Source: Blastocystis sp. Blastoise (lineage: Eukaryota > Protista > Bigyra: Opalinata). Taken from it: a stretch of DNA of 64,000 bases. Made by a program: the position numbers and the translations under genes. The notes under the pieces are model-generated. The model was not told where the DNA came from. It ran no database searches and saw nothing but the letters and a program-made list of their open reading frames with translations. The stretch is from NCBI GenBank assembly GCA_039096225.1, contig JBBPEB010000022.1, positions 1 to 64,000 on the forward strand, given 5' to 3'. Within the stretch, counting starts at the first letter, position 1. The number at the start of each line of letters is the position of its first letter. Of this stretch, positions 3,217-45,954 are shown piece by piece.

Positions 3217-3232
3217 TTTTGGGTACCCAAAA
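3217..3232. promoter_or_regulatory. Perfect 16-bp palindrome TTTTGGGTACCCAAAA in the putative bidirectional promoter
   Basis: Lies between the two divergent exon series; recurs at ~18311, ~28081, ~43119 and as a variant at ~36547. Confidence 0.5.
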
Positions 3233-3426
3233 TGTTTTTAATAAAAAATGTCCCTATTATCAGCTTAGCATAAGATAATAATAAAAATTCGAGGTTATTT
3301 ATGATTCCTATTAATTTTTAAATATGCATATTTTAAATATTGTCCCTATTTTACAAAAGTTCAAATATGAATATGTTTTTGTTTTCTACATAAAAATACT
3401 TATTTTATAATTAGTTATTAAATAAG

Positions 3427-6400
3427 ATGCCTAGAAAAGGCAGAATGTCATCAAGGCGGAGGTCCTTGAATCAAAAAAAATACGTTTCTCAAAGACGGTC
3501 CAGTATGTATTGTATTTATTTTTTTTTATTATTCATATATAGGTTCTTCTACTCAACAGGATGCAAGTATGGATGTCATTGATGGTGATGGTGCTTATCA
3601 ATATGGTCTTGAAGGTATATATTTATACATTTCTTTTTGTTTTATTATTTTATATTATCTTAGACTCTTCTCTGTCCTTGGTGTCCTTTACTGATGATGG
3701 TATAATGTTTTCAAGTGGTCTTGAAGGTATGTTGTCAATCATTTGTTTTTATTTTTATATTTTTATTTATCTATAGGTTCTTCTGTTGTTGTGGACTCTG
3801 TTGCTGGAGCTATTGATGATGATATACACTCCACTAATGGTCTTGAAGGTATGTTGTCAATCATTTATTTTATTTTTTTTTTTTATTTTTATTTATCTAT
3901 AGGTTCTTATACTCATGATGATGTTGTTGCTGATGCTACTGATGGTGATGCTAACTCTTCTCATGGTCTTCAAGGTATGTAATCATTTATTTATTTATTT
4001 ATTTTTAATTATTTCTTTTATTTCCTATTTATATGTTATTATAGGTTCTTCTGTTGCTATGAATGTTGGTGCTGATCTTAATCATAAAGAAGGTATATAT
4101 AATATATTTTCTTTTTCTTCTTTTTGATTTACTTTTATTTTATAAATATATATAGGTCCTTCTGTTCTGATAGTGTCTTCTGTTCATGGTACTGTATCTG
4201 ATGGTGATCATCCTTCTAATGCTAAAGGTATATAGATATATCATATATATATATTTTTTATTATTCTTTTAATTCTTTCTTATTTGTTTTTATATAGGTC
4301 CTTCAACTCAGTTAGTACATGGTCATTCTTCTATTCCTTCTTCAGAAGGTATATATATATATATATATATATATGTATCTATGTTTATTCTATTTTATGA
4401 TTCTATATAGGTGTGTCTTTTAATTTGGGATCGTGTGACTCTGTTGTTGGTCTTGATATAGTTACTACTAATATATATAAAGGTATATATATATATATAT
4501 AATATTATTTATTTATTTATACTTATACTATTGTATATATATATATAGGTGATGGTGTTAATAATTCTTCAGTCGTTGATGGTGTCAACAATTCTTCAAT
4601 TATTCAATGTATATTTATACTTATATTATATTCTATACTTATATAGGTTCAAATAAAGTTGTGGGTAAGTATTATTTATTATTTTAGTTTCTTTTTCTTT
4701 TGTTTTATTATTTTTTTTTCTTTCACAGATAATAGCTTTCTGTTGTCTGCTTTCTTTTTATTATCTATTTATATATTTATTTACTAAGCTTAGCTTTAGC
4801 TACTTAGTATTTAAATATTTAATAGAATCCTTTCTTTTTTCATTTTTGTTTTGTTATTTTTTTTTTTATTTTAATTTTACTTTAATCGTATCGATTAACG
4901 GGAAGGTGTCGGATATTAAGATAATTTTTGAATTACTTAATATTAAATAGTGTTGAGTATTTTAATATTTGTATTTAATTTAATTAATACAACTATTGAT
5001 TACCTATATGACTCATACTATTGCTGACTATTGTTCGCTTCTAACTCTATATAGTCTAACCGATGTAATACTATCAATGATGAGATATCTAAGTGTTAAG
5101 ATTCTTCACTTACTCACATTGTATATGATATTAACTGGTAGTTAGCTATATGTTTATAGAATGTTGTAACAAAGCACAATAGCTATAGATGTCCTCTATG
5201 AGGTTGAATCATATAGATTGTTTAATAAATTATACAATATTAATTACCTATACTTATTTAATATTAGTTTTCATTAATTATAATATTATCTTTCATTACA
5301 TTATAGTATTGAAGATAATTATTAATTAATAAAGTTTTTACTTTATATTATTTAATATATCATACTATATGTATGTATTATTATATTAATAAAGGTTATA
5401 TACTTTATATTAATAAATATATCATAGTATATCTATGTATTATTATATTAATAAAGGTTATATACTTTATATTAATAAATATATCATAGTATATCTATGT
5501 ATTATTATATTAATAAATGTTATACTTTATATTAATTAATATATCATAGTATATTCTATGTATTATTATATTAATAAAGGTTATATACTTTATATTAATA
5601 TATATAATATCATACTATACTTATGTATTATATTATATTAATAAAGGTTATACTTTATATTAATAAATATATCATAGTATATCTATGTATTATATTATAT
5701 TAATAAGAGTTATATACTTTATATTAATAAATATATCATACTATATCTATGACTTATATTATATTAATAAAGGTTATACTTTATATTAATTAATATATCA
5801 TACTATACTTATGTATCATATTATATTGATGAAGGTTATACTTTATATTAATTAATATATCATACTATACTTATGTATGTATTATTATATTAATAAATGT
5901 TATACTTTATATTAATATATATATTATCATACTATATCTATGTATTATATTATATTAATAAAGGTTATACTTTATATTAATTAATAAATACTTCAACAAC
6001 TATAACAATGAAAGTTAATTTATATACTACACAACTAAACTTTATTCTAAACTTAAACATAATATATTTAATATCTAATAATTAATATATATAGGTTCCA
6101 ATAAGGATAAAATAAATAATAATGATTTATCTAAATCATTTGGTTTTAACTCAAAACCTTTAGCTTTGTTTTCGACTTTTAATTTTCAAAATAATATTCC
6201 TTTACAAAACATTCAAAACAATAATTCAAATAACAATATTGATATTGATATCGATAATCGTTATTCACAAATAAATAATAATAATTCTATATTAAATAAT
6301 GGTTCAAACCTATTCAATCAAATGAATCCAGTTAATCAATCAATTAATAACATATCTATTGTTCAAAGTCAAATTAATAATAATAATCAATCTATTCCTA

Positions 6401-9400
6401 TATCAACTACTATTATACAACCTACAGAAAAAAATACTTCTGTTTCTAATAATAATAATGATTCTATTAATACTTCTTCACACTCTTTACCTGTTGTTAC
6501 TACTATTCCAACTGATGTAAATATATCTAACAATAATAATTCTACAATCATTAATGATAATACAAATAATTCAAGAAATAACACTAATACTAATAATAAT
6601 GAAACAATAATACATAGAAATAATAGATCTATTAATTCCATTATGAATAGTTATTTAACTATTCCTGATTTAAGTCCTATTCTTCCTCCTTTAAGTATTC
6701 TAACAAATATTCCTCATATTAATTTAAATAATGATAATGAATCAGAAATTATAACAACAATACCTAATAGTAGTAGTAGTAGTAGTTCAAGTGATAGTAG
6801 TAGTAGTAGTAGTAGTAGTTTTTCTGATAATGATTCTGATTCTGATTATATTGATCCTTTTCCTAATATTAATAGTAATACTCAAAATAATGACGAAATA
6901 CCAGTTGTAAGAACTATTAGAAGACCTATAACAGATAATAGTATGTTTTTTATTATTTAAATATATTTATTTAATACTTTTTTATAGTTGAAGAAGATAT
7001 AATTATTCATCCTATTATTAATAGAGGAAGAAGAAGAGCTTTAGATATTTGTATGCTATTTATTTTTTATAATTCTTTATGAATAATTAAATAACAAATT
7101 ATTTTTATAGATAATCAACAAAGATTATTATATCCTGGATTACATAATTGTATTGCTTCTATTCAAAGAAGTATTTATATATATTTAATATTTATTTTAT
7201 ATTATTTTATATAGATTCTCATGGTGATTTCGTATTAAATGAAGCATTGAATACTTATAAAGCTAATTATTTAGGTGATTTTAATGTTCATTGTGAATAT
7301 TGTCATGCTAAACATTTTGAATTAGAGAAAGGAATGAATGATAAGTTTTATACTTGCTGTGGTAGTGGTAAAGTAGTTCTTCCTGAGCTTCCTGATCTTC
7401 CTAATACTATTCGTTCTTTATTACAAAGAGATAATCCAGATTCAAGAGAATTTATTAATAATATTATTCGATATAATAATTCTGTTGCTTTAGCTTCTTT
7501 AGCTGGAAATAATACTTCTGATGATGATTTAAGAAATTCTTCTGGACCTTTACTATTTAAATGTGGAGGTAATATATATCATACTTTTAAGAGTGCTTTA
7601 GATTTTGATGTGAATGATCCTACAAGACATCCTGTATTCAATCAATATTATATGATAGATGGAGATGAAGCTACTCATATGAGAAGTATGAATCGATATT
7701 TTTGTGATTTAAAACCAAATATTTTAGAGATATTAGATAGTACAATAAGAGAATATCATCCATTAGCTCAAATATATAATTCACTTCGAGAAAGAGTAGA
7801 TGAAGTATTAGAAGAGAATAGTCAAATGAATAGAAATAATATTAATTTATTAATAGAGTTTAAGAAACAAAGAAGAGAAGTACCTGATATAAGAAGATAT
7901 AATACTCCTCAAGTAGATGAAGTAGCAGTAATATATCAATATAGAGAAGGAGGAGTAATGCCAGAAAGAAGTTATTGTTGTTTTCCTAGAAGTGGTATGG
8001 AAATAGTAGCTACTAATAGTAATAATGAACAGAATCGTTATACTTCAGGTCAATATATAGTAATGAAGAATACTAATTCTTATATAGATTGTATGGTTTA
8101 TCCAGTTATGTTTCCAACTGGAAGACAAGGTTGGTATCCAGATTTATTATCATTGAATCGTTCTAATCAAATTACTATTACTATGTTAGAATATTATAAT
8201 TATATGCTTCAAATGAAAGATCCACCTTATGATAATTATTTATTAAAATATAAGAAATTAACTTTACAATATATTACTGATAATTATATTCGAGTAGAAC
8301 AAAATAGAATTAATTATATACGAAATAATCAAAATAAGTTAAGAGCTTCAACTTATCAGAATATAAATAATATGTTAGAAGAGAGAGGAGATCAAATAAA
8401 TGAGAATGATAGAAATATAGATAGAATAGGTAAAGCTATTATATTACCTTCTTCTTTTGTTGGTAGTCCAAGAAATTTGCAACAGAAATATATGGATGCT
8501 ATGAGTGTAGTTCGAGAATATGGTAAACCTGATTTATTTATAACATTTACTTGCAATCCAGATTGGTTAGAAATAAAGAATAATATTCCAGAAGGTTATA
8601 CTGTTAATGAATTTCCAGATTTAGTTTCAAGAGTGTTTCATTTAAAGTTGAAACAATTACTTTCTGATATAAAGGATAAGAATATATTTGGTACTGTAGA
8701 AGCTTTATTATATTCAGTGGAATTCCAAAAGAGAGGTTTACCACATTCTCATATATTAATTATTTTAGATACGAATTCTAAATATAGAACAGAAGATGAA
8801 GTAGATAGTATAATAAGTGCAGAGATTCCTGATAAAGAATCAACTCCTCTTCTTTATGAATTAGTTAAGAAACATATGATTCATGGTCCATGTGGTCCTG
8901 ATTATGATACGAATTGTGTTTGTATTGATAGATCAACAGGTAAATGTAGTAAGAGATTTCCAAAAGAATATATAGAGCAAACTAATTGTCATTTAAATTC
9001 TTATCCTTTATATCAAAGAAGAAATATTCCTGATAGAACTATTACTCTTATTCGTAGTCATAATACTTATACTATTGATAATCGTTGGGTAGTTCCTTAT
9101 AATCCTTATTTATTATTGAAATATCAAGCTCATATTAATGTAGAAGTCTGTTGTAATATTCAAAGTACAAAATATATATATAAGTATGCATTAAAAGGAA
9201 ATGATTCTGTGATAGCTCAATTAAGAAGAGTGAATGATAATGGAATAGTAGATGAAACTCAAGCTTATTTAGATTGTCGATATGTTTCTCCTCCTGAAGC
9301 TTCTTATCGTTTGAATTGTTTTGAAATTACTTATAATTCTGTTTCTATTAATAGATTACCTATTCATTTACCTGATGATCCATATATATTATTTCGAGAA

Positions 9401-11827
9401 GGACATGAAGTAGAAGCATTAAGGAATAGTTTAGAGAAAGGTACTAAATTAACAAAATACTTTGATTTAGAGAAAGAAGTTCAGAATCAAAGAAAGATAT
9501 ATACTTATTATTATATAGAGAAGAAGCATGGTATTCGTAATATGAATAATGTAGAAGAAGAAAGAGAATTGATTCAAGTTCGTTTAGAAGAGATAAATAG
9601 AATAAATAGTTATGAAGTAGATGATGATAATATATCCGAAGAATTATTGAAAATATTAGATGAGAAATATCCTATTTATGCTTATCATGAAATACCAAAA
9701 TATTATGTATGGAAATCGAATACAAATACTTGGAATAGACGTCAGAGAGATATAAAAGCTTTAGGAAGAATGTATTATGTGAATCCAAAAGATAAGGAAC
9801 GATATGCTTTGAGATTATTATTATTGAATACGAAAGGAGCTGATAGCTTTGATTCTTTGAAGATAGTAAAAGGATTGAATAGTAATGAACCTTATAGAAC
9901 CTTTAGTGAAGCAGCTATAGCAAGAGGATTATTGAATAATGAGAGAGAAGTATTTGATTCATTTTCAGAAGCTATTGTTTTTGCTACTCCATGTCAATTG
10001 AGACAATTATTTATTACTTATATTTCAGAATCATTATTAACAAATGTGAAAGAGTTTTGGATTCGATTTAAATCATTTCTTAGTGAGGATTATAAACATT
10101 CAATGCATAATAATGAAATAGATTATATAAATACTCCTTTAGCTCAAGATTTAGATTCATCAAGTGTTATAGAAGATGATACTAATAGTGTTCTTCAAGA
10201 TTATGAAATACGTACTTTACAAGATATAAAAGAGATGATGATAAGTATAGGAGTGAATTATAATGATTTAGGATTACCTCAAGTAGAAGAACAACATCAT
10301 TATAATGATTATAATTATAATCCTACATTAGAATTACAAGAAGCTAATAGAGTAATAGAATTATTAAATGAAGAACAAAGAAATGCATTTGATAGAGTAA
10401 TTCATTCAATAGAAAGTAGTAGAATAGAAGATAAGTTATGTTTCTTTATAGATGGTCCAGGTGGAAGTGGAAAGACTTTCTTATATAATAGTTTATTAAG
10501 TTATTTACGTGGACATAATAAGAATGTATTACCTGTAGCTTCAACAGGAATTGCTTCTACTTTATTACCAGGTGGTAGAACAGCTCATAAACAATTTGGT
10601 ATTCCTTTGAATGTTGATCCTGATTCTACTTCAAATATAGATTTAGCTAGAGATAGAAGAAAAGTAGAAGAAATAAGAATAGCTGATTTAATAATATGGG
10701 ATGAAGCTCCTATGATGAAAGGTGATTGTTTTATGGTAGTACATAGATTATTATGTGATATAATGAATACAGAATTAGATATTCCTTTTGGTGGTAAAAC
10801 AGTAGTATTAGGAGGAGATTTCAGACAATGTTTACCAGTTATAAGAAAAGGAACTCAAGCTCAGATTGTTAGTTCTTCTATAAAGTTTTGTTCCTTATGG
10901 AATTCTATCAAAAATAATGTCATTCATTTATCAAGAAATATGAGAGCTTTAGAAGGAGCAGATGATTTTAGACAATGGTTATTACAAGTAGGAGATGGTG
11001 TTCTTTCTAATAATTATACTATTAGTCATCATTTAGATATAGATTATATTCCTATTCCTCCTCAATGTATTGTGAATGATGATTTATGTGTTACTGTATT
11101 TGGACATCGAATCAATACTTCTCTTGATTCTGATATCAAACGATTAGCTTCTTCTGTTATATTAGCTTCTACTAATGATTGTGTTGGTACTTTAAATGAT
11201 TTCATTGTTGATAATCTTCTTTCTGGAACTACTACTCCTTATATCTCTTCTGATTCTATTCTTGATTCTGAAACAGATGATCCAGAATCAAATTATCCTA
11301 TCGAGTTTATCAATTCTCAAACACCTTCTGGAATGCCTCCTCATATATTAAATTTAAAAATAGGTTGTATCATTATGCTTTTAAGAAATCTTAATCCTTC
11401 TAAAGGATTATGTAATGGTACTAGACTTATAGTAACTCGATTAGGATCAAATAATATTACTGCTACTATTTTAAATCCTCCTCCTTCTCTTACTATTGAT
11501 GAACAAACTGTTATTATTCCAAGAATCATCTGTAATTCAAATCCTGAAGATCTTCCTATTATTATATCCAGAAGACAATTTCCTATTCGTTTAGCCTTTG
11601 CCATGACTATCAACAAATCTCAAGGACAAACATTTGAAAGAGTTGGTGTTTACTTAGATCGTCCTGTCTTCTCTCATGGTCAACTCTATGTTGCTTTCAG
11701 TCGTGCTCGATCTTTCAACGCTCTTTTTATTAAGGTAGTTGATAGTGTCTCTCAAGGTAAGATGATTAGTAGTAGTAATGAAATATTTACTAAGAACGTG
11801 GTCTTCAGGTCTACTCTAAATAATTAA
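3427..11827 (+). CDS. Helitron RepHel (HUH Rep + PIF1 helicase); predicted 15 exons, 2,085 aa
   Basis: Exons 3427-3502, 3543-3614, 3664-3726, 3777-3848, 3903-3974, 4045-4092, 4156-4227, 4298-4348, 4411-4482, 4549-4608, 4647-4664, 6095-6940, 6988-7050, 7111-7170, 7215-11827 join into one open frame. Motifs: CEYC..CC Zn-knuckle-like, PDLFITFTCNP, VEFQKRGLPHSH, YIYKY, GPGGSGKT, IWDEAPM, GDFRQCLP, FAMTINKSQGQT, HGQLYVAFSR. The last exon is certain; the upstream joining is inferred. Confidence 0.9.
5320..5985. repeat. ~60-bp AT-rich minisatellite (~11 units) in RepHel intron 11
   Basis: Unit TATTATATTAATAAAGGTTATA(TA)CTTTATATTAATAAATATATCATASTATATCTATG repeated in tandem. Confidence 0.9.
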
Positions 11828-15260: not shown

Positions 15261-16769
15261 ATTAAATAGATTATTTAAATAATATCTGAAAAACTAAAAA
15301 CAAAAAAAAATATATAAATTCTTGTTTGATTCATTATATTTGTTATTTATTTTTTTTTAAATATATTTTGTATTTATAAATAGTTTAGTTACTTTTTTAA
15401 TCATTATGGAATTTCTAAAGCTAATAAATCTCGAAATGGGTCACAATGTGAAGTATTGAAAAATATTTTTATTTTATTAAATTAATTTAAATAGATTAGA
15501 ATAAAGTAGTTTAAACTATTTTTAACCATTTCATAAAACTAAAACAAATTTAACACAACAATATCAACATTTATTTTCACATTAACGACTTAAACACATA
15601 GTTTTAGAATTAATATTAATGAAATCAATCTAAATAGAATTTTTATACATAACAGTATCAACAATATCGCTTTTAGAGAGACTTTACCATTTCGATATCC
15701 ACTGTATCAAAATCGTTTTAGACATAACTTTCACACAGTATAGATCTCATTGTATTATTTATTAATTATAGTTTAATGTCTTGAATCTCTGACCTCATGA
15801 CGCTTTTTAATACATTTTGAAAAATTGACACACTTATAGTTAATTTAAAACTCTAATATTTAAACACTATACTCAACATAACTCTATCAATACATTAGTT
15901 ACCATTTTAACACTCTTTATAAACATTTTACATTTGGTCATACACTTTTTCAAGAGTATTTTTGTCACTTCTTTTAATATAATTTAGACTATAGTTCATA
16001 GTTTGATAAATAAAATGTTTTATATTGAATCTCGTCCGTTGAGTAACTTATTTCTACATTTAAAAAAATAAACCCCTTTAAACTTGTTTTTAAAAGTCAA
16101 AATTTTCATAGTATAATAAAAACACAATTTTAAACAAAGAAGCTAACTCTTTAAAATTTCTAGACAACTCAAACACATTGTTAATTAACTTTTCAAAAAT
16201 GAAATTCTCTTAATTTTTAATATGTTGTAGAATTTAGCTTAGTGTATATTAAATCATTTTTTAGAATTTCGAATCTCTTAGTTTAAGAACCCCTTTTTAC
16301 AATTTTTTAAATTTTACAACCTTAAACTTACTTTTATGACTTTATATTTACACAATAATATATATATGCAAGATGAATTAGTGGAGAAAAACAAAACTTA
16401 AATATCTCAATCATTGACAGTATTAAATCAGTTATACTATATAAAGTTAAAAGTGGACAATAGATATTTTAAATTAAATTGAATCCAAACATTTAAAAAC
16501 TTGACACTATTTAATATATTAAGTAATTGAAGAATTATCTTAATAGTCGACACAATTTAAATAAAAAAAAAAAAAAAGAAAAAGAACAAAACAAAAATAG
16601 AACAAAAGAAAACATTTAAATATAGAATAGCTAAAACGATAACAACAGCATAAATAAATAAATAATATAAAGAAAGCAGATAATAGAAAGCTATTAAATG
16701 TGAAAAATAATAATAATAATAAGCAAAAGAAAAAGAAAAAGAACTAAAAAAAAAAAATCTAAACATAAC

Positions 16770-18119
16770 CATAACACTAAGAGAACCTATATAGATAAAA
16801 GATATATATATATATAATAAGAGATAGTATAATAAATATATCTAACATATATATATATACCTTCAGTATTAAAAACTATTCACACCATCACTATATAGAT
16901 ATAAGATATAGATATATTAAAAGAAATATTATAAATATTTGTTATATATATATATATATATATATACCTTTAGATACATTTTTATTATTAAAATGAAAGC
17001 TAACATTAGGGTGATAAGATCCCCTATTAGAAAAGACACCTATATATAATATAATAAATGATAAAATATATATAAACAATAAATATATATATATACCTTC
17101 TAAAGAAGGAACAGAGGAAACACCATGATATCTTAACTGACTTGAAGAACCTATATATAATGAAAAGATAATTAATAAATCAAAAAAAAAAGAAAGGAAG
17201 AAATAAGAATATACCTGTATCATTATTACCATTAATCCAAGACTCCATAAGAAAAGAACGACCTATATAAGATAAAAATAATAATAAACTAAATTAAATT
17301 TAAAAAGTAGACATACCTTCATCATTAATACGTTCAGCAACTACAACCACAACAGTAGAATAACCTATAAAGAAACAGTAATAGACAAATAATAAATAAA
17401 AAAAAATAATAATAAATGAATGACAATATATATATACCTTTAATATCATATGAGCAGTCTACCTGATCACCAACAACATCCATAGCAACATTTACATCAA
17501 TAAAACAAACCTATATATATAAAAGTAAAAAAAGAAAAATAAATGAATGACAACATACCTTCAACACCACACAGACATCTATTATCAACATCACTGTTAA
17601 CATGTACAACAACTGAAGAACCTATATATATAGAAATAATAAAAAAATAATAATAAAATATAAAAAAAAAAAAATAAATGATTGGTAACATACCATCTAT
17701 AAAGCAAGAAGAACCTACATCAACACCGATATCACTATTGGAATCACTTACAATAACAGAAGAACCTATATATAAAGAAAAGTTAAAAAAATAAAAACAA
17801 ATCATTGACAACATACCTTCACAGTTAGCATAACAGGCAACACCACCACCTCTGTATGATACAAATAACATAGAACAACCTAAAATAATATAATAAATAA
17901 TTAATAAAAAAAGAAATGGAAAATATATACCTTTAAGACCATCAGAGCAAGTACCACCAAGACTAAGAACATACATAACTGGATTCTATTGAGTAGAAGA
18001 ACCTAAATATGAATACTAATAACAAATAGATACAATATACCTGATTTTCTTTGAAATATAAATTATTTTTTATTTCCAGACCTCCACCTTGAAGCAATTT
18101 TGTTGTTCTTAGACATCAT
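16770..18119 (-). pseudogene. Micro-exon array of the RepHel N-terminus (copy B); in-frame stops, introns present
   Basis: Homologous to 3427-4664; TAA in exon 1 and TAG in exon 2. Confidence 0.8.
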
Positions 18120-18891
18120 AATTAATAATTTAATATATAAATGAGTATTAGATTATGTATTTAACAATCCTATTTCATTTGAATTAATAAATATAATAGG
18201 GTCTATTTTTAAAATATGCTTCTTAAAACATAATAGAAATCAAAAATAGCCTTAATTTTTCATTGATTTTATTACAAAAGTAATAATTGGGTCATTCTGG
18301 TTTAAAATCATTTTGGGTACCCAAAAAACATAGTTCTTTACTCTTTTTTAAATATTTTATTGTATTGATTGACTTAGTGTGTTTTATTTATTTATTTAAA
18401 GTTATTTAACTTAGTATTATATTTATCTATTTATATACTAATTTATTTATTTAAAATAATACACTTCTTTATAGGATTCTCTTGTATTTGCCTTGGTTGT
18501 CATGGTTAGTGGTTCTTGAAGTGGTCCTGGTTAAATGAAATGGTTTATTTAGTGTCAGGTATATAAATATATATATTTTTTATAATATTTCATTTTTAAT
18601 TCATTTGTTTCTTTAATTGTTTCTTTTTTTATTATCTTTTTGGTTTATATTTTCTTTATATATAATTAATCAATAGATTATTAGTTATTTTTATTCTATA
18701 GGGAAGAAAATGTAACTGATGTGTGTGTTATACTCTTCGTTTTTTCATGTCTTTCTTTTAAATCTGTGGTTTCAGGTTGATTTATATGTATATATTTATA
18801 TTTTATTTATTATTTTTGTTATTTATTGTTTCTTTATTTATTTATATTTTATTTATTAAATTTATTTTATTTATTTATTTATTTATTTATT

Positions 18892-18934
<43 letters not shown>

Positions 18935-19512
18935 TTATATTTATTATATTTATATGTTTATTTATTTATTATTATTTATTTATTTTATATGTTTATTTAT
19001 TTATTTTTAATATTTATTTATGTATTTATTAATTATTTATATTATCTTTTTTATATGTTTTCTATTTTATATAGGTTTAAAATCTTCTTATTCTTTTTTT
19101 CTTCTTTCTTCTTCCTTCTTACTTCTTTCTCATTCTTTCTACTTCCTATTTCCTTCTTCATTCCTTCTTCCTTCTTCCTATTTCCTTCTCCATTCATGCT
19201 TCCTTCTTCCTATTTCATTCTTCATTCATGCTTCCTACTTCCTACTTCCTACTTCCTTCTTCCTTCTTCCTCATCTTTGATTCTTCTTACTTACTTCTTC
19301 TTCATTCTGGATTCTTCCTTCTTCCTCATCCTTCCTTATTCTTACTTCTTCTTACTTCCTTCTTTCTCATCCTTCTTCCTCATCCTTCCTTATTCTTACT
19401 TCTTCTTCCTAATCCTTCCTACTTCCTTCTTCCTCATCCTTCCACTTCATTTCCTTCTTATTATATATATATAAATATATATATTTGATTATTATTATTA
19501 TTTATAAACTCC

Positions 19513-26903: not shown

Positions 26904-27476
26904 GGAGTTTATAAATAATAATAATAATCAAATATATATATATATATATATATAATAAGAAGGAAATGAAGTGGAAGGATGAGGAAGAAGGAAGTAGGAA
27001 GGATTAGGAAGAAGAAGTAAGAATAAGGAAGGATGAGGAAGAAGGATGAGAAAGAAGGAAGTAAGAAGAAGTAAGAATAAGGAAGGATGAGGAAGAAGGA
27101 AGAATCCAGAATGAAGAAGAAGTAAGTAAGAAGAATCAAAGATGAGGAAGAAGGAAGAAGGAAGTAGGAAGTAGGAAGCATGAATGAAGAATGAAATAGG
27201 AAGAAGGAAGCATGAATGGAGAAGGAAATAGGAAGAAGGAAGAAGGAATGAAGAAGGAAATAGGAAGTAGAAAGAATGAGAAAGAAGTAAGAAGGAAGAA
27301 GAAAGAAGAAAAAAAAAGAATAAGAAGATTTTAAACCTATATAAAATAGAAAACATATAAAAAAGATAATATAAATAATTAATAAATACATAAATAAATA
27401 TTAAAAATAAATAAATAAACATATAAAATAAATAAATAATAATAAATAAATAAACATATAAATATAATAAATATAA

Positions 27477-27515
<39 letters not shown>

Positions 27516-28287
27516 AATAAATAAATAAATAAATAAATAAAATAAATTTAATAAATAAAATATAAATAAATAAAGAAACAATAAATAACAAAAATAATAA
27601 ATAAAATATAAATATATACATATAAATCAACCTGAAACCACAGATTTAAAAGAAAGACATGAAAAAACGAAGAGTATAACACACACATCAGTTACATTTT
27701 CTTCCCTATAGAATAAAAATAACTAATAATCTATTGATTAATTATATATAAAGAAAATATAAACCAAAAAGATAATAAAAAAAGAAACAATTAAAGAAAC
27801 AAATGAATTAAAAATGAAATATTATAAAAAATATATATATTTATATACCTGACACTAAATAAACCATTTCATTTAACCAGGACCACTTCAAGAACCACTA
27901 ACCATGACAACCAAGGCAAATACAAGAGAATCCTATAAAGAAGTGTATTATTTTAAATAAATAAATTAGTATATAAATAGATAAATATAATACTAAGTTA
28001 AATAACTTTAAATAAATAAATAAAACACACTAAGTCAATCAATACAATAAAATATTTAAAAAAGAGTAAAGAACTATGTTTTTTGGGTACCCAAAATGAT
28101 TTTAAACCAGAATGACCCAATTATTACTTTTGTAATAAAATCAATGAAAAATTAAGGCTATTTTTGATTTCTATTATGTTTTAAGAAGCATATTTTAAAA
28201 ATAGACCCTATTATATTTATTAATTCAAATGAAATAGGATTGTTAAATACATAATCTAATACTCATTTATATATTAAATTATTAATT

Positions 28288-29568
28288 ATGATGTCTAAGA
28301 ACAACAAAATTGCTTCAAGGTGGAGGTCTGGAAATAAAAAATAATTTATATTTCAAAGAAAATCAGGTATATTGTATCTATTTGTTATTAGTATTCATAT
28401 TTAGGTTCTTCTACTCAATAAAATCCAGTTGTGTATGCTCTTGGTCTTGGTGGTACTTGCTATGATGGTCTTTAAGGTATATATTTTTCCATTTCTTTTT
28501 TTTTTTAATTATTTATTATATTATTTTAGGTTCTTCTATGCTATTTGAATTATGCAGTGGTGGTGGTGTTGCCTGTTATGCTAACTGTGAAGGTATGTTG
28601 TCAATGATTTGTTTTTATTTTTTTAACTTTTCTTTATTTATAGGTTCTTCTGTTATTGTAAGTGATTCCAATAGTGATATCGGTGTTGATGTAGGTTCTT
28701 CTTGCTTTATAGATGGTATGTTACCAATCATTTATTTTTTTTTTATATTTTATTATTATTTTTTTATTATTTCTATATATATATAGGTTCTTCAGTTGTT
28801 GTACATGTTAACAGTGATGTTGATAATAGATGTCTGTGTGGTGTTGAAGGTATGTTGTCATTCATTTATTTTTTTTTTTTACTTTTATATATATAGGTTT
28901 GTTTTATTGATGTAAATGTTGCTGTTGATGTTGTTGGTGATCAGGTAGACTGCTCATATGATATTAAAGGTATATATATATTGTCATTCATTTATTATTA
29001 TTTTTTTTTTATTTATTATTTGTCTATTACTGTTTCTTTATAGGTTATTCTACTGTTGTGGTTGTAGTTGCTGAACGTATTAATGATGAAGGTTGTCTAC
29101 TTTTTAAATTTAATTTAGTTTATTATTATTTTTATCTTATATAGGTCGTTCTTTTCTTATGGAGTCTTGGATTAATAGTAATAATGATACAGGTATATTC
29201 TTATTTCTTCCTTTCTTTTTTTTTTGATTTATTAATTATCTTTTCATTATATATAGGTTCTTCAAGTCAGTTAAGATATCATGGTGATTCCTCTGTTCCT
29301 TCTTTAGAAGGTATATATATATATTTATTGTTTATATATATTTTATCATTTATTATATTATATATAGGTGTCTTTTCTAATAGGGGATCTTATCACCCTA
29401 ATGTTAGCTTTCATTTTAATAATAAAAATGTATCTAAAGGTATATATATATATATATAACAAATATTTATAATATTTCTTTTAATATATATATGTTAGAT
29501 ATATTTATTATACTATCTCTTATTATATATATATATCTTTTATCTATATAGGTTCTCTTAGTGTTATG
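28288..29568 (+). pseudogene. Micro-exon array (copy C); stops present, introns 1-3 present
   Basis: Introns 28367-28404, 28477-28529, 28593-28643 and onward; AAA TAA in exon 1 and CAA TAA in exon 2. Confidence 0.8.
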
Positions 29569-31060
29569 GTTATGTTTAGATTTTTTTTTTTTTTAGTTCT
29601 TTTTCTTTTTCTTTTGCTTATTATTATTATTATTTTTCACATTTAATAGCTTTCTATTATCTGCTTTCTTTATATTATTTATTTATTTATGCTGTTGTTA
29701 TCGTTTTAGCTATTCTATATTTAAATGTTTTCTTTTGCTATTTTTGTTTTGTTCTTTTTCTTTTTTTTTTATTTAAATTGTGTCGACTATTAAGATAATT
29801 CTTGAAATACTTAGTATGTTAAATAGTGTCAAGTTTTTAAATATTTGAATTAAATTTTAAAACATTTATTGTCACTTTTAACACTGTATAGTATTACTGA
29901 TTTAAAACTGTCAATAATTGAGATATTTAAGTTTTGAGTTTCTCTGTTTACTCGCATTTATATTTACATAATTTTGTGAACGTATTAACTCATAAAAGTA
30001 ACTTTAAGGTTGTAAAATAAAAAATATTATCTTAAAATAGGAGATTCGAAATTCTAATAGAAGTTTAATATATAATAAGCTAAATTCTACAACATATTAA
30101 AAAATAAGAGAATTTCATTTTTGAAAAGTGAATTAACAATGTGTTTGAGTTGTCTAGAAATTTTAAAGAGTTAGTATATTCTTTTAAAATTGTGTTTTCA
30201 TTAGACTATGAAAATTTTGACTTTTAAAAACAAGTTTAAAGGGATTAATATTTTTAAATGTAGAAATGAATTATCCAAAGGATGAGATTCAATATAAAAT
30301 ATTTTATTTATCAAACTATGAATTATATTCTAAATTATATCAAAAGAAAGGACAAAAATACACTTGACAAAGTGTATGACCAAATGTAAAATGTTTATAA
30401 AGAGTGTCAAAATGGTGACTCTTATGTTGATAGAGTTATGATGAGTATAATGTTATAATATTAGCTTTTAAAATTAATTATAAGTGTGTCAACCTTTCAA
30501 AATGTGTTAAAAATGATCTTGAAGTCAGAGATTCAAGACATTAAACTTGAATTAATAAATAAAATAATGAGATCTATACTATGTGAAAGTTATGTCTAAA
30601 ACTATTTTGATACACTTGATATCGAAATGGTAAAGTCTCTCTAAAAGTAATATTGTTGACACTTTTGTGTTTAGAAATGCTATTTAGATTGAATTTATTA
30701 ATATTAATTCAAAAACTTTGTGTTTAAGTTGTTAAAGTCAAAATGAATGTTGACTTTGTTGTGTTAGATTTGTTTTAGTTTTATGAAATGATTAAAATAA
30801 GTTTATGCTATTTTATTATAATCTATTTAAAATGATTTTACAACATAAAAATATTTTTCAATACTTAACATTATGACCCATTTCTAAATTTATTAGCTTT
30901 AGAAACTCCATAATAATTAAAGCAGTAACTCAACTATTTATAAATACAAAATATATTTTTAAAATAATAAATAACAAATATAATGATTCAAAAAGGATTT
31001 CTTATTTTCTTCAAGTATTGTTTTTAGTTTTTCAGATACTATTCAAATAATCTATTTAGT

Positions 31061-33626: not shown

Positions 33627-34917
33627 ATTAAATTGATCATTTGAATAGTATCTGAAAAACTAAAAACAATACTTAAAAAAATGAGAAACCCTTTTTGAAT
33701 CATTATATTTGTTATTTATTATTTTAAAAATATATATTGTATTTATAAATAGTTAAGTTACTATTTTAATTATTATGGAGTTTCTAAAGCTAATAAATTT
33801 AGAAATGGCTCACAATGTTAAGTATTGAAAGTCATTATTATGTAAAATCATTTTAAATAGATTATAATAAGGTAGTTTACACTTTCTTTAATCATTTCAT
33901 AAAACCAAAACCCATTTAACACAACAAAGTCAACATTCATTTTCACTTTAACGACTTAAACACATAGTTTTAGAATTAATATTAATAAAGTCACTTTAAA
34001 TAGCATTTCTATACATAAAGGTGTCAACAATATCGGTTTTAGAGAGACTTCACCATTTTGATATCCAGTGTATCAAAATAGTTTTAAACATAACTTTCAC
34101 ACAATATAGATCTCATTGTGTTATATATTAATTAAAATTTGATGTCTTGAATCTCTGATATAGAGACCCTTTTTTATACATTTTGAAAAGTTGACACACT
34201 TAAAGTTAATTTAAAAAGCTAACATTTACACACTATACTCAGCATAACTCTATAAACACGTTAATAACGATTTTAACACTCTTTATAAGCCTTTTACATT
34301 TGGTCATACACTTTGTCAAGTGTATTTCTGTCCCTCGTTTTGATATAGTTTAAAACATAAATTATAGTTTGATAAATAAAATGTTTCGTATTGAATCGCA
34401 TCCTCCTAAAACTTATTATTATATTTTTTTTAAATAAAACCCTTTAAACTTGTTTTTAAAAGTCAGTACTTTCATATTATAACAAAAACACAGTTTTAAA
34501 CAAACAGACAAACTCTTTTAAATTTTTAGACAACTCAAACACATTTTTAATTCACTTGTGAAAAATAAAATTATTTTAATTTTTTACATGTTGTAGAGTG
34601 CATGCTATTTTATATTAAACAATTTTTAGAATTTTTAATCTCTTAGTTGAAGAGCCTATTTTTTAACATTTATTAATTTTTACAATTTTACATATAATAA
34701 ACTATATAAAAAAAGTATGTGGAGGATTCAAAACTTAATAATAAGTCAATTATTGATATGATTACATTGGTGAGTCTATATAGAATTAGATGAGATCAAT
34801 AAATGTTTTAATTAAATTAAATACAAAGATTAAAATGATCCATACTATTAATATTAACTAATTTAACAATTGTTTTAATAGTCAACAATTAAAATTAAAA
34901 AACAAAGCAAAAAAACA

Positions 34918-34948
<31 letters not shown>

Positions 34949-35093
34949 CAAAGTATTATATTAAATAAGTAAATATAGATTAGCTAAAGCTAAACAAAGT
35001 AAATAAATAGATATATAAAGAAAGAAAATATAAATAAAAAATAATAAGCAAAAGAAAAAGAAAATTAAAAAAATAAAAACATTCTAAGTATAC

Positions 35094-36352
35094 CCATCAT
35101 ATTAGAAAAGCCTAAAAAATAAAAGACATATATATATATATATATATAAGAGATATAATAATAAATATATGATATATATATATACCTTTAAGTATTAGAG
35201 ACCTATCCACACTATCACCTATATAGATAAAGATATATATATAAAAGATACATTATAATAAATATATGTAATATATATATATACCTTTAGATATATTTCT
35301 ATTTATAAGAATAAACATTATCATCATGATGATAGTATTCCAAATTAGATGGTACACCTATATATAATAAATGATTGAGATAATAATAATAATATACATG
35401 AATAAACAATAAATATATATATATATATACCTTCTAAAGAAGGAACAGAAGAATAACCATGATATCATAACTGAGTTGAACAACCTATATATGAACAAAT
35501 TAGTATTAATAAAATAAAAAGAAATTAAAAAATAAAGAAATATGAATATACCTGTATCATTACCTATAATAGAAGACTCGATCAGAATAGAAGGACCTAT
35601 ATATAAATAATAAATAAAAATAAACTAAATTAAATTTAAAAAATAGACATACCTTAATTATTAACACCTTCAGCAACCACACACACAACAATAAAAGAAC
35701 CTATAAAGAAACAGTAATAGACAAATAATAAATAAAAAAATAATAATAATAAATGAATGACAATATATATATATACCTTTAATACCATAGGAACAGTCTA
35801 CCTGATCACCAACAACATCAGCAGCAGTATTGAAAACATCAGAAGAACCTAAATATATATAAAAGTAAAAAAGAAAAATAAATGAATGACAACATACCTT
35901 CAACACTACACAGATATCTTCATCTACACCACTGTTTACATGCACAACAACTGAAGAACCTATATATACAAAGAAATAACAAAAGAAAAATATAATAAAA
36001 TAAATGATTGGCAACATACCTTCAATACCATAAGAGGAACCTATATCTACGTAAACAGAACCATTAGCATCATTTAAAGCAACAGAAGAACCTATAAATA
36101 AAGAAAAATTAAAGAAATAAAAACAAATCATTGACAACATACCTTCACAGTTAGCATAACAGGCAACACCACAGCCTCCGTATGATACAAATAACATAGA
36201 AGAACCTTTAAGACCATCAGAGCAAGTAATACCAAGACCAAGAACATACACAACTGGATCCTATTGAGTAGAAGAACCTGAAAGTTTTTGAGAAATGTAT
36301 ATTTTTCCATCTACACACTTCGATCTTGACAGCATCATGCCTTCTGAGGCAT
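35094..36352 (-). pseudogene. Micro-exon array (copy D); introns 1 and 2 precisely absent
   Basis: Exon-exon fusions at 36278/36277 and 36206/36205; intron 3 (36142-36092) retained. Confidence 0.8.
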
Positions 36353-37882
36353 CTTAGATAATATTTTAATTATAAAAAATAAGTGTTTTCTCTTAATATA
36401 AAAATTGTGTTTATATTTCTACTTTTAAAGAAAAGGGTCTTTTATAAAAATATGCTTCTTAAAATCTAATAGAAATCAAAAATACCCTTGAGTTTTCATT
36501 GATTTATTTACAAAAGTAATAATTGGGTCATTTTCTATTAAAAACATTTATGGTACCCAAAAAACATAGTTTTTTACATTTTTTAAATATTTGATTATAT
36601 TATTTGATTCTGTATATTTTATTTATTTATTTGATATTGTTTTATATTGCATTATATCTATCTATCTATATAGTTATTTATTTATTCAAAATAATACACT
36701 TTTTTATAGGATTCTCTTGTATTTGTCTTGGTTGTTGTAGTAAAGAGTTCTTGAAGTGGTCACGGCTATGTGAATTGGATTACTTTGTGTCAGGTATATA
36801 ATATATATTTATTTTTATAGTATTTGTTTTTTAATTCTCTCATTACTTTGTTTTATTTTATATTTTTGTTATCTATATTATTTATTTTGTCTTTTTATAT
36901 CATTTATTAAATAGTTTTTAATTATTTTTATTCTATAGGAAAGAAAATGTTGTTGATGTGTTGTCGTCTTCGTTTTTTCATGTCATTCTTCTTTAGTCTG
37001 TGGTTTCAGATTAATCTATTAGGTATATATTTATATTTTATTTATTATTTTCATTTTTATTATTTATTATTTATGTTTTTTATTTATTTATTTATGTTTT
37101 TTATTTATTTATTTATTATATTTATTTATTTATTTATTATATTTATTTATTATATTTATTATATTTATTTATTATATTTATTTATTTATTATATTTATTT
37201 ATTTATTTATTTATTATATTTATTTATTTATTATTTATTTATTATTTATTTATTTTTATATGTTTTCTATTATATATAGGTTTTATAGTCTTCTTGTTCT
37301 TTTTTCTTCTTTCTTCCTTCTTTCTTCTTCATTTTACTTCTTCCTTCTTCCTTATCCTTCCTACTTCTTTCTTCCTTCTTTCTTCCTTCTTTCTTCTTCC
37401 GTCTTTCTTATCCTTCCTACTTCTTTCTTCCTTCCTTCCTCATCCGTCATTCTTCCTTCCTTATTCTTCCTTCTTCCTCATCCTACTTACTTCTTCCTTC
37501 TTTCTCATCCTTCTTTCTCATCCTTCTTCCGTCTTCCTTATTCTTCCTACTTCCTTCTTCCTCATCTGGCATTCTTCCTACTTCTTCCTACTTCTTCCTA
37601 CTTCTTCCTGCTTCATCATTCATCATTTCCTTCTTCCTGCTTCCTTCTTTCTTCTTTCCCATCCTTGATTCTTCCTTCTTCCTTCTTCCTCATCCTTCAT
37701 CCTTGTTTTTTCCTTCTTCTTCCTCATTCTTCCTTCTTCCTCATCATTCCTACTTTTACATCCTTCCTCATTCTTCCTTCTTCCTCATCCTTCCTCATCC
37801 TTCCTACTTCATTCTTCCTCATTCTTCATTCTTTCTTCTTTCTTCCTACTTCCTACTTCTTTCTTCCTACTTCCTTCATTCC

Positions 37883-41946: not shown

Positions 41947-42490
41947 GGAGTTTATAAATAATAATAATAATCAAATATATATATTTATATATATATAATA
42001 AGAAGGAAATGAAGTGGAAGGATGAGGAAGAAGGAAGTAGGAAGGATTAGGAAGAAGAAGTAAGAATAAGGAAGGATGAGGAAGAAGGATGAGAAAGAAG
42101 GAAGTAAGAAGAAGTAAGAATAAGGAAGGATGAGGAAGAAGGAAGAATCCAGAATGAAGAAGAAGTAAGTAAGAAGAATCAAAGATGAGGAAGAAGGAAG
42201 AAGGAAGTAGGAAGTAGGAAGCATGAATGAAGAATGAAATAGGAAGAAGGAAGCATGAATGGAGAAGGAAATAGGAAGAAGGAAGAAGGAATGAAGAAGG
42301 AAATAGGAAGAAGGAAGAAGGAAGAAGAAGGAAGGAAGAAGAAGTAAGTAGGAAAGATGAGGAAGAAGGAAGAAGTAAGAAGGAAGAAGAACGAAGATAG
42401 AAAGAAGAAAAAAAAACTAAGAAGAATATTAAACCTATATACAATAAATAAACATAATAAATAAATAAATAAATAAATAAATAATAAACA

Positions 42491-42540
<50 letters not shown>

Positions 42541-43328
42541 TAAATAAATAAACATATAAAAAAAATGAATAAATAAATAATAAATAAATAAATAAATAAT
42601 AAAAAAAAAGTAAACAATAAATAATAAAAATAATAAATAAAATATAAATATATACCTTTAAAATAACCTTGAACGACAGATTAAAGAAGGAAAATATTTA
42701 GCAACGAAGACCACAACACATCCATTAAAGTTTCTTTCCTATAGAATAAAAATTATTAATAATATATAGAATAAATTATATGTAAAGACTAAATAAATAA
42801 TATTGATAATAAAAATAATAAATAATAAAAACGAATTAACAAAAAGAAAAACAGATCTTAAGAAATAAATAATATATTTATATACCTGATCATAAATAAA
42901 CCATTTTACACAGCCAAGACCACTTCAAGAACACTTCAACACCACAACCAAGGAAAATACAAAAGAATCCTATAGAAAAGTGTATTATTTTAAATAAATA
43001 AATATATACATACAAATATATATAAAAATAATAACTAAACAATATCAAATAAATAAATAAAACATACTCAGTCAATCAATATAATTAAATATTTAAAAAA
43101 AGAGTAAAGAACTATGTTTTTTGGGTACCCAAAATGATTTTAAATAAGAATGACCCAATTATTACTTTAGTAACAAAATCAATAAAAAATTAAGGTTTTT
43201 TTTTATTTCTATTATGTTTAAAGAAGCATATTTTGAAAATAGACCCTATTATATTTATTAATACAAATGAAATAGGATTCTTAAATACATATTCAAATAC
43301 TTAATTGTATATTATATTATTAAATAAG

Positions 43329-44464
43329 ATGTCTGAAAACAACAAAATGTCATCCAGGAGGAGGCCTGGAAATAAAAAATAATTTATATTTCAAAGAAAA
43401 TCAGGTTCTTCTACTCAATAAAATCCAGTTGTGTATGCTCTTGGTCTTGGTGGTACTTGCTATGATGGTCTTTAAGGTTCTTCTATGCTATTTGAATTAT
43501 GCAGTGGTGGTGGTGTTGCCTGTTATGCTAACTGTGAAGGTTCTTCTGTTATTGTAAGTGATTCCAATAGTGATATCGGTGTTGATGTAGGTTCTTCTTG
43601 CTTTATAGATGGTATGTTACCAATCATTTATTTTTTTTTTATATTTTATTATTATTTTTTTATTATTTCTATATATATATAGGTTCTTCAGTTGTTGTAC
43701 ATGTTAACAGTGATGTTGATAATAGATGTCTGTGTGGTGTTGAAGGTATGTTGTCATTCATTTATTTCTTTTTTTACTTTTATATATATAGATTTGTTTT
43801 ATTGATGTAAATGTTGCTATGGATGTTGTTGGTGATCAGGTAGACTGCTCATATGATATTAAAGGTATATATATATTGTCATTCATTTATTATTATTTTT
43901 TTTTTATTTATTATTTGTCTATTACTGTTTCTTTATAGGTTATTCTACTGTTGTGGTTGTAGTTGCTGAACGTATTAATGATGAAGGTATGTCTACTTTT
44001 TAAATTTAATTTAGTTTATTATTATTTTTATCTTATATAGGTCGTTCTTTTCTTATGGAGTCTTGGATTAATAGTAATAATGATACAGGTATATTCTTAT
44101 TTCTTCCTTTCTTTTTTTTTTGATTTATTAATTATCTTTTCATTATATATAGGTTCTTCAAGTCAGTTAAGATATCATGGTGATTCCTCTGTTCCTTCTT
44201 TAGAAGGTATATATATATATTTATTGTTTATATATATTTTATCATTTATTATATTATATATAGGTGTCTTTTCTAATAGGGGATCTTATCACCCTAATGT
44301 TAGCTTTCATTTTAATAATAAAAATGTATCTAAAGGTATATATATATATATATAACAAATATTTATAATATTTCTTTTAATATATATATGTTAGATATAT
44401 TTATTATACTATCTCTTATTATATATATATATCTTTTATTTATATAGGTTCTCTTAGTTTTATT
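43329..44464 (+). pseudogene. Micro-exon array (copy E); introns 1-3 precisely absent
   Basis: Fusions at 43404/43405, 43476/43477, 43539/43540 relative to copy C. Confidence 0.85.
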
Positions 44465-45954
44465 GTTATGTTTAGATTTTTTTTTTTTTAGTTCTTTTTC
44501 TTTTTCTTTTGTTTATTATTATTATTATTTTTCACATTTAATAGCTTTCTATTATCTGCTTTCTTTATATTATTTATTTATTTATGCTGTTGTTATCGTT
44601 TTAGCTATTCTATATTTAAATGTTTTCTTTTGCTATTTTTGTTTTGTTCTTTTTTTTTTTTTTTATTTAAATTGTGTCGACTATTAAGATAATTCTTGAA
44701 ATACTTAGTATGTTAAATAGTGTCAAGTTTTTAAATATTTGAATTAAATTTTAAAACATTTATTGTCACTTTTAACACTGTATAGTATTACTGATTTAAA
44801 ACTGTCAATAATTGAGATATTTAAGTTTTGAGTTTCTCTGTTTACTAGCATTTATATTTACATAATTTTGTGAACGTATTAACTCATAAAAGTAACTTTA
44901 AGGTTGTAAAATAAAAAATATTATCTTAAAATAGGAGATTCGAAATTCTAATAGAAGTTTAATATATAATAAGCTAAATTCTACAACATATTAAAAAATA
45001 AGAGAATTTCATTTTTGAAAAGTGAATTAACAATGTGTTTGAGTTGTCTAGAAATTTTAAAGAGTTAGTATATTCTTTTAAAATTGTGTTTTCATTAGAC
45101 TATGAAAATTTTGACTTTTAAAAACAAGTTTAAAGGGATTAATATTTTTAAATGTAGAAATGAATTATCCAAAGGATGAGATTCAATATAAAATATTTTA
45201 TTTATCAAACTATGAATTATATTCTAAATTATATCAAAAGAAAGGACAAAAATACACTTGACAAAGTGTATGACCAAATGTAAAATGTTTATAAAGAGTG
45301 TCAAAATGGTGACTCTTATGTTGATAGAGTTATGATGAGTATAGTGTTATAATATTAGCTTTTAAAATTAATTATAAGTGTGTCAACCTTTCAAAATGTG
45401 TTAAAAATGATCTTGAAGTCAGAGATTCAAGACATTAAACTTGAATTAATAAATAAAATAATGAGATCTATACTATGTGGAAGTTATGTCTAAAACTATT
45501 TTGATACACTTGATATCGAAATGGTAAAGTCTCTCTAAAAGTAATATTGTTGACACTTTTGTGTTTAGAAATGCTATTTAGATTGAATTTATTAATATTA
45601 ATTCAAAAACTTTGTGTTTAAGTCGTTAAAGTCAAAATGAATGTTGACTTTGTTGTGTTAGATTTGTTTTATTTTTATGAAATGATTAAAATAAGTTTAT
45701 GCTATTTTATTATAATCTATTTAAAATGATTTTACAACATAAAAATATTTTTCAATACTTAACATTATGACCCATTTCTAAATTTATTACCTTTAGAAAC
45801 TCCATAATAATTAAAACAGTAATTTAACTATTTATAAATACAAAATATATTTTTAAAATAATAAATAACAAATATAATGATTCAAAAAGGATTTCTTATT
45901 TTCTTCAAGTATTGTTTTTAGTTTTTCAGATACTATTCAAATAATCTATTTAGT

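Follow-up and report, generated by a model that had tools for sequence, protein, structure and literature searches.

We analyzed a 64,000-nt stretch of the genome of Blastocystis sp. Blastoise (contig JBBPEB010000022.1 of GenBank assembly GCA_039096225.1, positions 1 to 64,000; hereafter the window), in which a predicted 15-exon gene occupies positions 3427-11827. Its last exon encodes a RepHel enzyme, and we consider it likely that the gene as a whole encodes the transposase of a young autonomous Helitron (element A), with a long leader in frame with RepHel and, within that leader, an array of micro-exons built by duplication. The exon chain was recovered by a mechanical search for stop-free segments bounded by AG and GT. 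All 14 of its introns are GT..AG and in phase 1, and the joined frame is open for 2085 amino acids (aa), with 548 aa upstream of the final exon. Its parts are as follows.

3427-3502, + strand: exon 1, with the start codon and a basic leader (10 K/R in 25 residues) resembling a nuclear localization signal (NLS); ends in phase 1
3543-4664, + strand: micro-exon array, exons 2-11, an acidic stretch of about 200 residues rich in S, G, V and D
3543-3614, 3664-3726, 3777-3848, 3903-3974 and 4045-4092, + strand: exons 2-6
4156-4227, 4298-4348, 4411-4482, 4549-4608 and 4647-4664, + strand: exons 7-11
Between the micro-exons, + strand: introns 2-10, 38-70 nt
4665-6094, + strand: intron 11, 1430 nt, the sole long intron
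6095-6940, + strand: exon 12, 282 residues, Asn/Ser-rich and of low complexity
6988-7050 and 7111-7170, + strand: exons 13 and 14, nearly invariant among lineages
6941-6987, 7051-7110 and 7171-7214, + strand: introns 12, 13 and 14, phase 1
7215-11827, + strand: final exon, the RepHel core with a Rep/HUH-type domain and a PIF1-family helicase, 1536 residues

The internal exons measure 72, 63, 72, 72, 48, 72, 51, 72, 60, 18, 846, 63 and 60 nt, every one a multiple of 3. A sequence-only reading of the window had proposed these lengths, the 14 phase-1 introns, a basic, NLS-like first exon and a stop-free join adding about 548 aa before RepHel, all of which are borne out here. The window is AT-rich (GC about 0.19-0.28 per 2 kb), and within the gene GC is 0.32-0.42 in the micro-exons vs 0.05-0.16 in the introns and 0.28 in RepHel. 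Read in the predicted frame, the codons of the array show periodicity, 44% of them starting with G and 71% ending in T, and the array encodes 28 D+E vs 4 K+R.

The host, strain Rus-B of Blastocystis sp. 'Blastoise', is a Russian tortoise gut isolate with a 33.3-Mb genome of 23% GC, annotated with BRAKER3, StringTie and Mikado tuned to favour RNA-seq-supported introns; the genome paper contains no discussion of Helitrons (PMC10690189). A figure of 43% from Table 1 of that paper was considered as the host coding GC and rejected, as the column appears to be a completeness figure. The top protein match of the gene is a GenBank 'hypothetical protein, Blastocystis sp. Blastoise' at 100% identity. 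GenBank protein P0122 is the 2085-aa predicted chain at every residue, and P0001 is the identical chain begun at Met7. The gene model is already public in GenBank, but it is unnamed and undescribed, and a family of over 20 transposase genes and array-only fragments is found among the proteins annotated as hypothetical in this genome.

The identity of the enzyme is clear from the final exon, which matches PF14214 (Helitron_like_N) over all 191 positions (E 2e-56) and, in the same exon as Rep, PF05970 (PIF1; E 2e-64) and PF21530 (Pif1_2B; E 2.5e-19). It also aligns to residues 118-836 and onward of Helraiser (PDB ID: 7LCC; E 1.4e-296). Like Helraiser and canonical RepHel proteins, the final exon places a PIF1-family helicase after a Rep (HUH-type) domain, and the element is multicopy with non-autonomous deletion derivatives; unlike in Helraiser, about 548 residues precede the matching part, encoded by 14 exons of which ten are 18-72 nt long. 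Because the match begins at Helraiser residue 118, these upstream residues extend what is otherwise an ordinary RepHel. Helitron transposases are generally portrayed as compact proteins made up of Rep and helicase. Among the matches listed, the nearest RepHel relatives outside this genome are animal Helitron proteins (from a pseudoscorpion, a lizard, insects and cnidarians), at no more than 43% identity and of ordinary length, mostly 1100-1900 aa; no protein from other Blastocystis is among the 120 best matches listed to the RepHel exon (7217-11824). The array itself has eight genome copies at about 100% identity over 1274 nt and others at 95, 94, 93, 85, 81, 77, 74 and 67%, and exon 12 is present in 20 genome copies. 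Such near-identical copies, along with the four non-autonomous ones in the window, mark the element as recently mobile.

The array bears the marks of growth by the tandem duplication of exon+intron units, as the sequence-only reading had claimed. Tandem Repeats Finder detects 2.5 copies (79% matches) of a 126-nt unit of exon and intron at 3716-4021, the region of exons 3-5, the first 18 nt of introns 3 and 4 are identical, and the 60-nt exon 10 contains, by eye, an internal 30-nt duplication. The process has left different traces in c81 and c74, two of three divergent lineages that are compared with element A below: c81 has a homologous 123-nt repeat and a separate 105-nt unit (33-nt exon plus 72-nt intron) present 3.7 times, and one 60-nt exon in A corresponds to three 33-nt exons in both c81 and c74. 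Four further copies of the 5' module lie in the window.

16356-19056, - strand: copy B, a non-autonomous 5' module with a decayed array, an extra unit and 5 stops in the homologous frames
27355-29900, + strand: copy C, non-autonomous, with an extra unit, without the exon-10 unit, 3 stops
34795-37271, - strand: copy D, non-autonomous, introns 1-2 lost exactly, 7 stops
42425-44794, + strand: copy E, close to copy C, introns 1-3 lost exactly

Alignment of these copies shows one extra unit between exons 4 and 5 in copies B-E and the absence of the exon-10 unit from C and E, which agrees with the gain and the loss noticed earlier. The uniform phase 1 of the array, with a Gly codon split as G and GT at the junctions, follows if duplication was tolerated only when the borders of a unit share the same phase. 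This is the familiar rule of exon shuffling, by which a tandem exon+intron duplication is tolerated when both borders are in one phase. The units of 126 nt and 105 nt, intron included, resemble symmetric phase 1-1 duplications in this respect, but they encode low-complexity acidic pieces of 6-24 residues in a transposon gene and not folded domains. The array would thus have arisen, and would still expand and shrink, through tandem duplication and loss of exon+intron units, and only units with equal start and end phase could duplicate and leave the downstream transposase intact.

Splicing at the predicted sites is supported by copies from which introns have disappeared. Copy D is without introns 1-2 and copy E without introns 1-3, in each case precisely at the predicted junctions, while copy C, a close relative of E, retains introns 1-3; the earlier suggestion that intron-less copies confirm junctions 1-3 therefore stands, for junctions 1-2 in D and 1-3 in E. 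In public run X1, one contig removes 4093-4155, which is exactly intron 6, and another contig retains this intron. Intron 6 is kept in 20 of the 20 genome copies of at least 95% identity, none of which is an intron-6-less DNA copy, so the joined form must be either RNA or a DNA copy outside the assembly, and on either origin splicing occurs at that site. Four junctions (introns 1, 2, 3 and 6) are therefore backed independently of gene prediction. For introns 1-5 and 7-14 no joint was found in the X1 contigs, whose thin and patchy coverage says nothing on absence.

Splicing also matters for the frame. Retention of 11 of the 14 introns brings in a stop inside the intron, and retention of intron 1 or 2 shifts the frame; intron 4 (54 nt, stop-free) is the sole case that can be read through. 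Since retention of nearly every intron breaks the frame, full splicing is needed to make RepHel. Control of P-element type, in which the transposase is regulated via intron retention, would offer a parallel, as retention here would block RepHel production for 13 of the 14 introns. The truncated product would differ from that case in being the leader only and not a DNA-binding repressor.

The junction that joins the array to the rest of the gene has its own evidence in exon 12. In this exon the open frame begins 13 nt ahead of the acceptor, and no ATG occurs until codon 76; the first 75 codons are stop-free (P about 5e-4 by shuffling), while the other two frames have 4 and 18 stops. Because exon 12 starts open without an ATG, translation must enter from an upstream exon ending in phase 1, and from this we infer the junction between exons 11 and 12. 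Exon 11 (4647-4664) resembles the start of exon 12 (6095-6112), acceptors included (GSNKVV vs GSNKDK, 10 of the first 12 nt identical), a likeness which suggests that intron 11 originated by insertion or duplication where exon 12 begins. In three copies with an array about 100% identical to that of the window (genome G000, C6:30207-36354, C7:8256-17345 and C31:777297-787227), exon 12 lies 4.5-8.3 kb from the array (vs 1.4 kb here). Its displacement from near-identical arrays implies that intron 11 took insertions of 3-7 kb there, and the GenBank models at these copies begin with short exons from the inserted DNA (MQPRSG...).

To follow the gene across lineages, element A was set beside three divergent lineages (c85, c81 and c74), each extended through RepHel. 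All three have a complete 4613-nt final exon with zero internal stops, and their arrays, with 11, 13 and 13 leading exons respectively, are open and in phase 1 throughout. The changes in exon length between lineages (-6, -3, -18, -42 and -3 nt) are multiples of 3 in five of five independent cases, and exon 12, at 846, 888, 858 and 861 nt in the four lineages, differs only by multiples of 3 as well; differences in intron length are multiples of 3 in 7 of 34. When substitutions were simulated neutrally at the observed density, the probability that the array stayed stop-free was 0.012-0.12 per lineage pair, and the homologous frames of the non-autonomous copies B-E contain 2-7 stops. Taken together, the length changes, the simulations and the stop-free arrays exclude chance and show that the array frame is under selection in the RepHel-bearing lineages examined. 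Selection along the gene, expressed as the ratio of nonsynonymous to synonymous divergence (dN/dS) or, for exon 1, as the proportions of synonymous and nonsynonymous differences (pS and pN), is distributed as follows.

Exon 1: pS 0.74-0.84, pN 0.11-0.16 (P down to 4e-6), dS saturated
Whole micro-exon array: dN/dS 0.65-1.43, dS 0.10-0.30
Micro-exons, clear orthologues only: dN/dS 1.2-2.9, few synonymous changes
Exon 12: dN/dS 0.4-1.0, dS 0.03-0.09
Final exon: dN/dS 0.01-0.08, dS 0.03-0.05

The exon 1 peptide and RepHel are under strong purifying selection, and the basic peptide of exon 1 is kept across deep haplotypes. Positive selection on the array was weighed but not adopted, as the dN/dS of 1.2-2.9 rests on 3.5-5.5 synonymous changes; array values above 1 are inflated by AT-biased mutation at the GC-richer first and second codon positions. 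What is kept in the array is composition, with 23-30 acidic vs 4-6 basic residues and 52-56% S+G+V+D in the four lineages. Conservation of exon ends, where splicing enhancers might lie, is marginal (87-89% vs 85%). Selection on the array thus appears, from these comparisons, to be for translatability and splice sites and not for peptide sequence.

An array that stays open at dN/dS of about 1 behaves unlike a stand-alone gene or an untranslated leader and exactly as expected of a leader in frame with an essential enzyme. This bears directly on a division of the locus into two genes, which we consider distinctly unlikely. Exons 1-11 would then be a separate small gene or a non-coding leader, with transcripts ending early in intron 11, and RepHel would be driven by a promoter within 4665-6094, its translation beginning either at the ATG at 6322 or in another first exon. 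Several findings favour such a division and weigh against a single gene with an in-frame leader. In length, intron 11 exceeds the other introns 20-35-fold, X1 contigs lie within it, and the non-autonomous copies retain the array along with the first ~470 nt of intron 11, which they have in common. GenBank holds array-only models (P0135) as well as RepHel models in which different first exons join this acceptor of exon 12 (P0129, P0133 and P0134). At the junction 4664->6095 there is no joint in X1, and no intron-less genome copy was found; X1 is the only usable public run, and it consists of contigs only, with patchy coverage and an RNA library type that is a guess. Two more points weigh against the preferred account of the leader and its origin: introns 1, 11, 12, 13 and 14, which lie outside the duplicated units, are also in phase 1, which duplication does not explain, and the disorder assigned to the leader is based on a single-sequence model, which is weak evidence.

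Against a division into two genes, a stand-alone gene at dN/dS of about 1 would lose its frame over 15-23% divergence and five indels. The 18-nt exon 11 keeps its donor and phase in lineages where the exon sequence differs, and exon 12 is open for 75 codons from its acceptor without an ATG, as described above. The alternative first exons, moreover, sit in insertions or in a tandem repeat absent from c81 and c74. This repeat occupies 5318-5986 of intron 11 (62-nt unit, 10.7 copies, 88% matches), and the alternative first exon of P0129 derives from it. We therefore favor the single gene, in which a leader of about 548 residues precedes the RepHel enzyme of the 4.6-kb final exon in the same frame.

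Within that gene, the symmetry of the exons raises the question of combinatorial skipping, by which the transposase would be made as isoforms with different N-termini, as the sequence-only reading had inferred alongside a splicing-dependent control of expression, both of them hypothetical. The arithmetic of skipping is sound: every internal exon is a multiple of 3, so that its omission preserves the frame, and the bases at the exon ends show on inspection that no combination of skips gives a stop at a junction codon. The micro-exon genes (MEGs) of schistosomes work in this way (PMC4350168). They share with the present gene runs of tiny symmetric exons between ordinary exons and a fast-evolving peptide (PMC4350168); in MEGs, however, the coding sequence is mostly micro-exonic, the products are secreted and alternative splicing is documented, whereas here ten symmetric micro-exons supply about 200 of 2085 residues (~10%) of the frame of a nuclear enzyme, so that most of the coding region lies outside micro-exons. 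No skipped form was seen in X1, where the data are very thin, and the public full-length models each contain all micro-exons of their own copy. The variation that we do see lies between DNA copies (11 vs 13 leading exons, units gained and lost) and not between transcripts. As the array peptide is without sequence constraint, the identity of an isoform is unlikely to matter, and an open frame with a drifting peptide fits a merely translatable leader better than a selected set of isoforms. We regard skipping of this kind as quite improbable.

A new observation emerged when exons and introns were compared separately, using window positions 3227-4700 against the copies L009, L011, L013, L020, L023 and L025: among close lineages, divergence is 4-6 times higher in the micro-exons than in the intervening introns. 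It amounts to 8-9.5% for micro-exons 2-6 vs 1.2-2.5% for introns 1-6 (P 4e-5 to 6e-4), and introns 1-8 are more alike than micro-exons 2-9 in five of the five lineage pairs tabulated. Deep pairs show no excess of exon over intron divergence. Since synonymous sites are elevated too, positive selection at the peptide level is insufficient to account for the exon excess, and AT-biased mutation predicts only an excess of about 1.5-fold. The excess could come from strong constraint on the short introns, or from conversion confined to the exons with spliced complementary DNA (cDNA) as its source. Gene conversion by spliced cDNA may be the process that also took introns 1-3 out of copies D and E.

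Constraint on the introns would be expected if the array were selected as a carrier of introns, with the exons serving as in-frame spacers and 5' splicing marking, licensing or boosting the mRNA of an otherwise intron-free 4.6-kb frame, whether through export, translation or escape from the silencing of unspliced transcripts. We hold this to be possible, though unlikely. It would explain the conservation of introns over exons just described, the keeping of frame and splice sites at dN/dS of about 1 while the peptide drifts, and the multiplication of units, each of which adds an intron; the exact intron losses also indicate that decayed non-autonomous copies were still spliced. On the other hand, a sister RepHel of the P0127 type lacks the array although it has the basic first exon, and the conserved acidic composition of the array hints at some role of the protein.

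Helitrons are known for gene capture, and the array might alternatively be a fragment of a host gene that was captured and fused to RepHel, which we consider very improbable. The GC of the array (0.32-0.42) does differ from that of RepHel (0.28), but this follows from its content of Gly, Ser, Val, Asp and Ala, with T at third positions. A word-index protein search with residues 1-225, which span exon 1 and the array, yielded no donor: it matched only five proteins, all of this genome (P0135-P0139), which by sequence represent array-only models from further copies of this array.

The preferred reading, that of a leader in frame with RepHel, gives the leader three parts. The first would be the conserved basic peptide of exon 1, probably a nuclear-import signal. 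The second would be the acidic stretch from the ten exons of 18-72 nt, which is probably disordered: the AF2 single-sequence model of residues 1-560 has a mean pLDDT of 33. The third would comprise the Asn/Ser-rich exon 12 and the two exons of about 60 nt that follow it. Residues 1-230 of the leader have no Pfam match, residues 226-880 give sub-threshold noise only, exon 12 has no Pfam match, and the ESM Atlas returned no usable match for the leader.

The lineages are mosaics in their 5' parts. In c81 and c74, the 5' module is 74-80% identical to that of A, with RepHel at 96.5-96.9%, and the identity of single exons within one lineage pair ranges from 62% to 100%. Because identity shifts block by block, we conclude that lineages recombine inside the array. 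Lineages c93 and c74 have a common upstream region and exon 1, yet differ by 19% downstream; the upstream region and exon 1 form a module whose recombination is independent of the remaining array.

An active family has, on this reading, placed a long, duplicating and frame-neutral leader of tiny exons before a Helitron enzyme. It would offer a natural example of symmetric exon+intron units expanding inside an essential frame, of selection for translatability without selection on sequence, and of recombination between transposon lineages that yields mosaic 5' modules. Should expression or nuclear entry be governed by the leader or its introns, the family would also provide a new handle on how a short-intron, AT-rich host lives with an active rolling-circle transposon.

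Some further observations concern the element's limits and its relatives. Helitrons begin with 5' TC, end with 3' CTRR with a hairpin, and insert without target duplication. On the 5' side of element A, homology between copies reaches past 1953. A GC-richer, tRNA-like stretch lies at 1922-1990, just upstream of purine-rich repeats, and occupies the same place in c85 and c81; this conserved position makes it part of the 5' region of the element. The sister RepHel variant (P0127), on another contig, has a similar basic first exon (MP..R.RMS.RRRS), a longer Asn-rich exon and no micro-exon array. Loci of this type are L034 (G000 C31:556568-559792) and L035/L036 (C15), and the second intron predicted for the variant is in phase 2. 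Finally, the peptide MLYPIELC, which forms the first exon of the GenBank RepHel models P0124 and P0130, is encoded at window positions 39796 (+ strand) and 25011 (- strand), outside element A, which points to chimeric gene models joining neighbouring elements.

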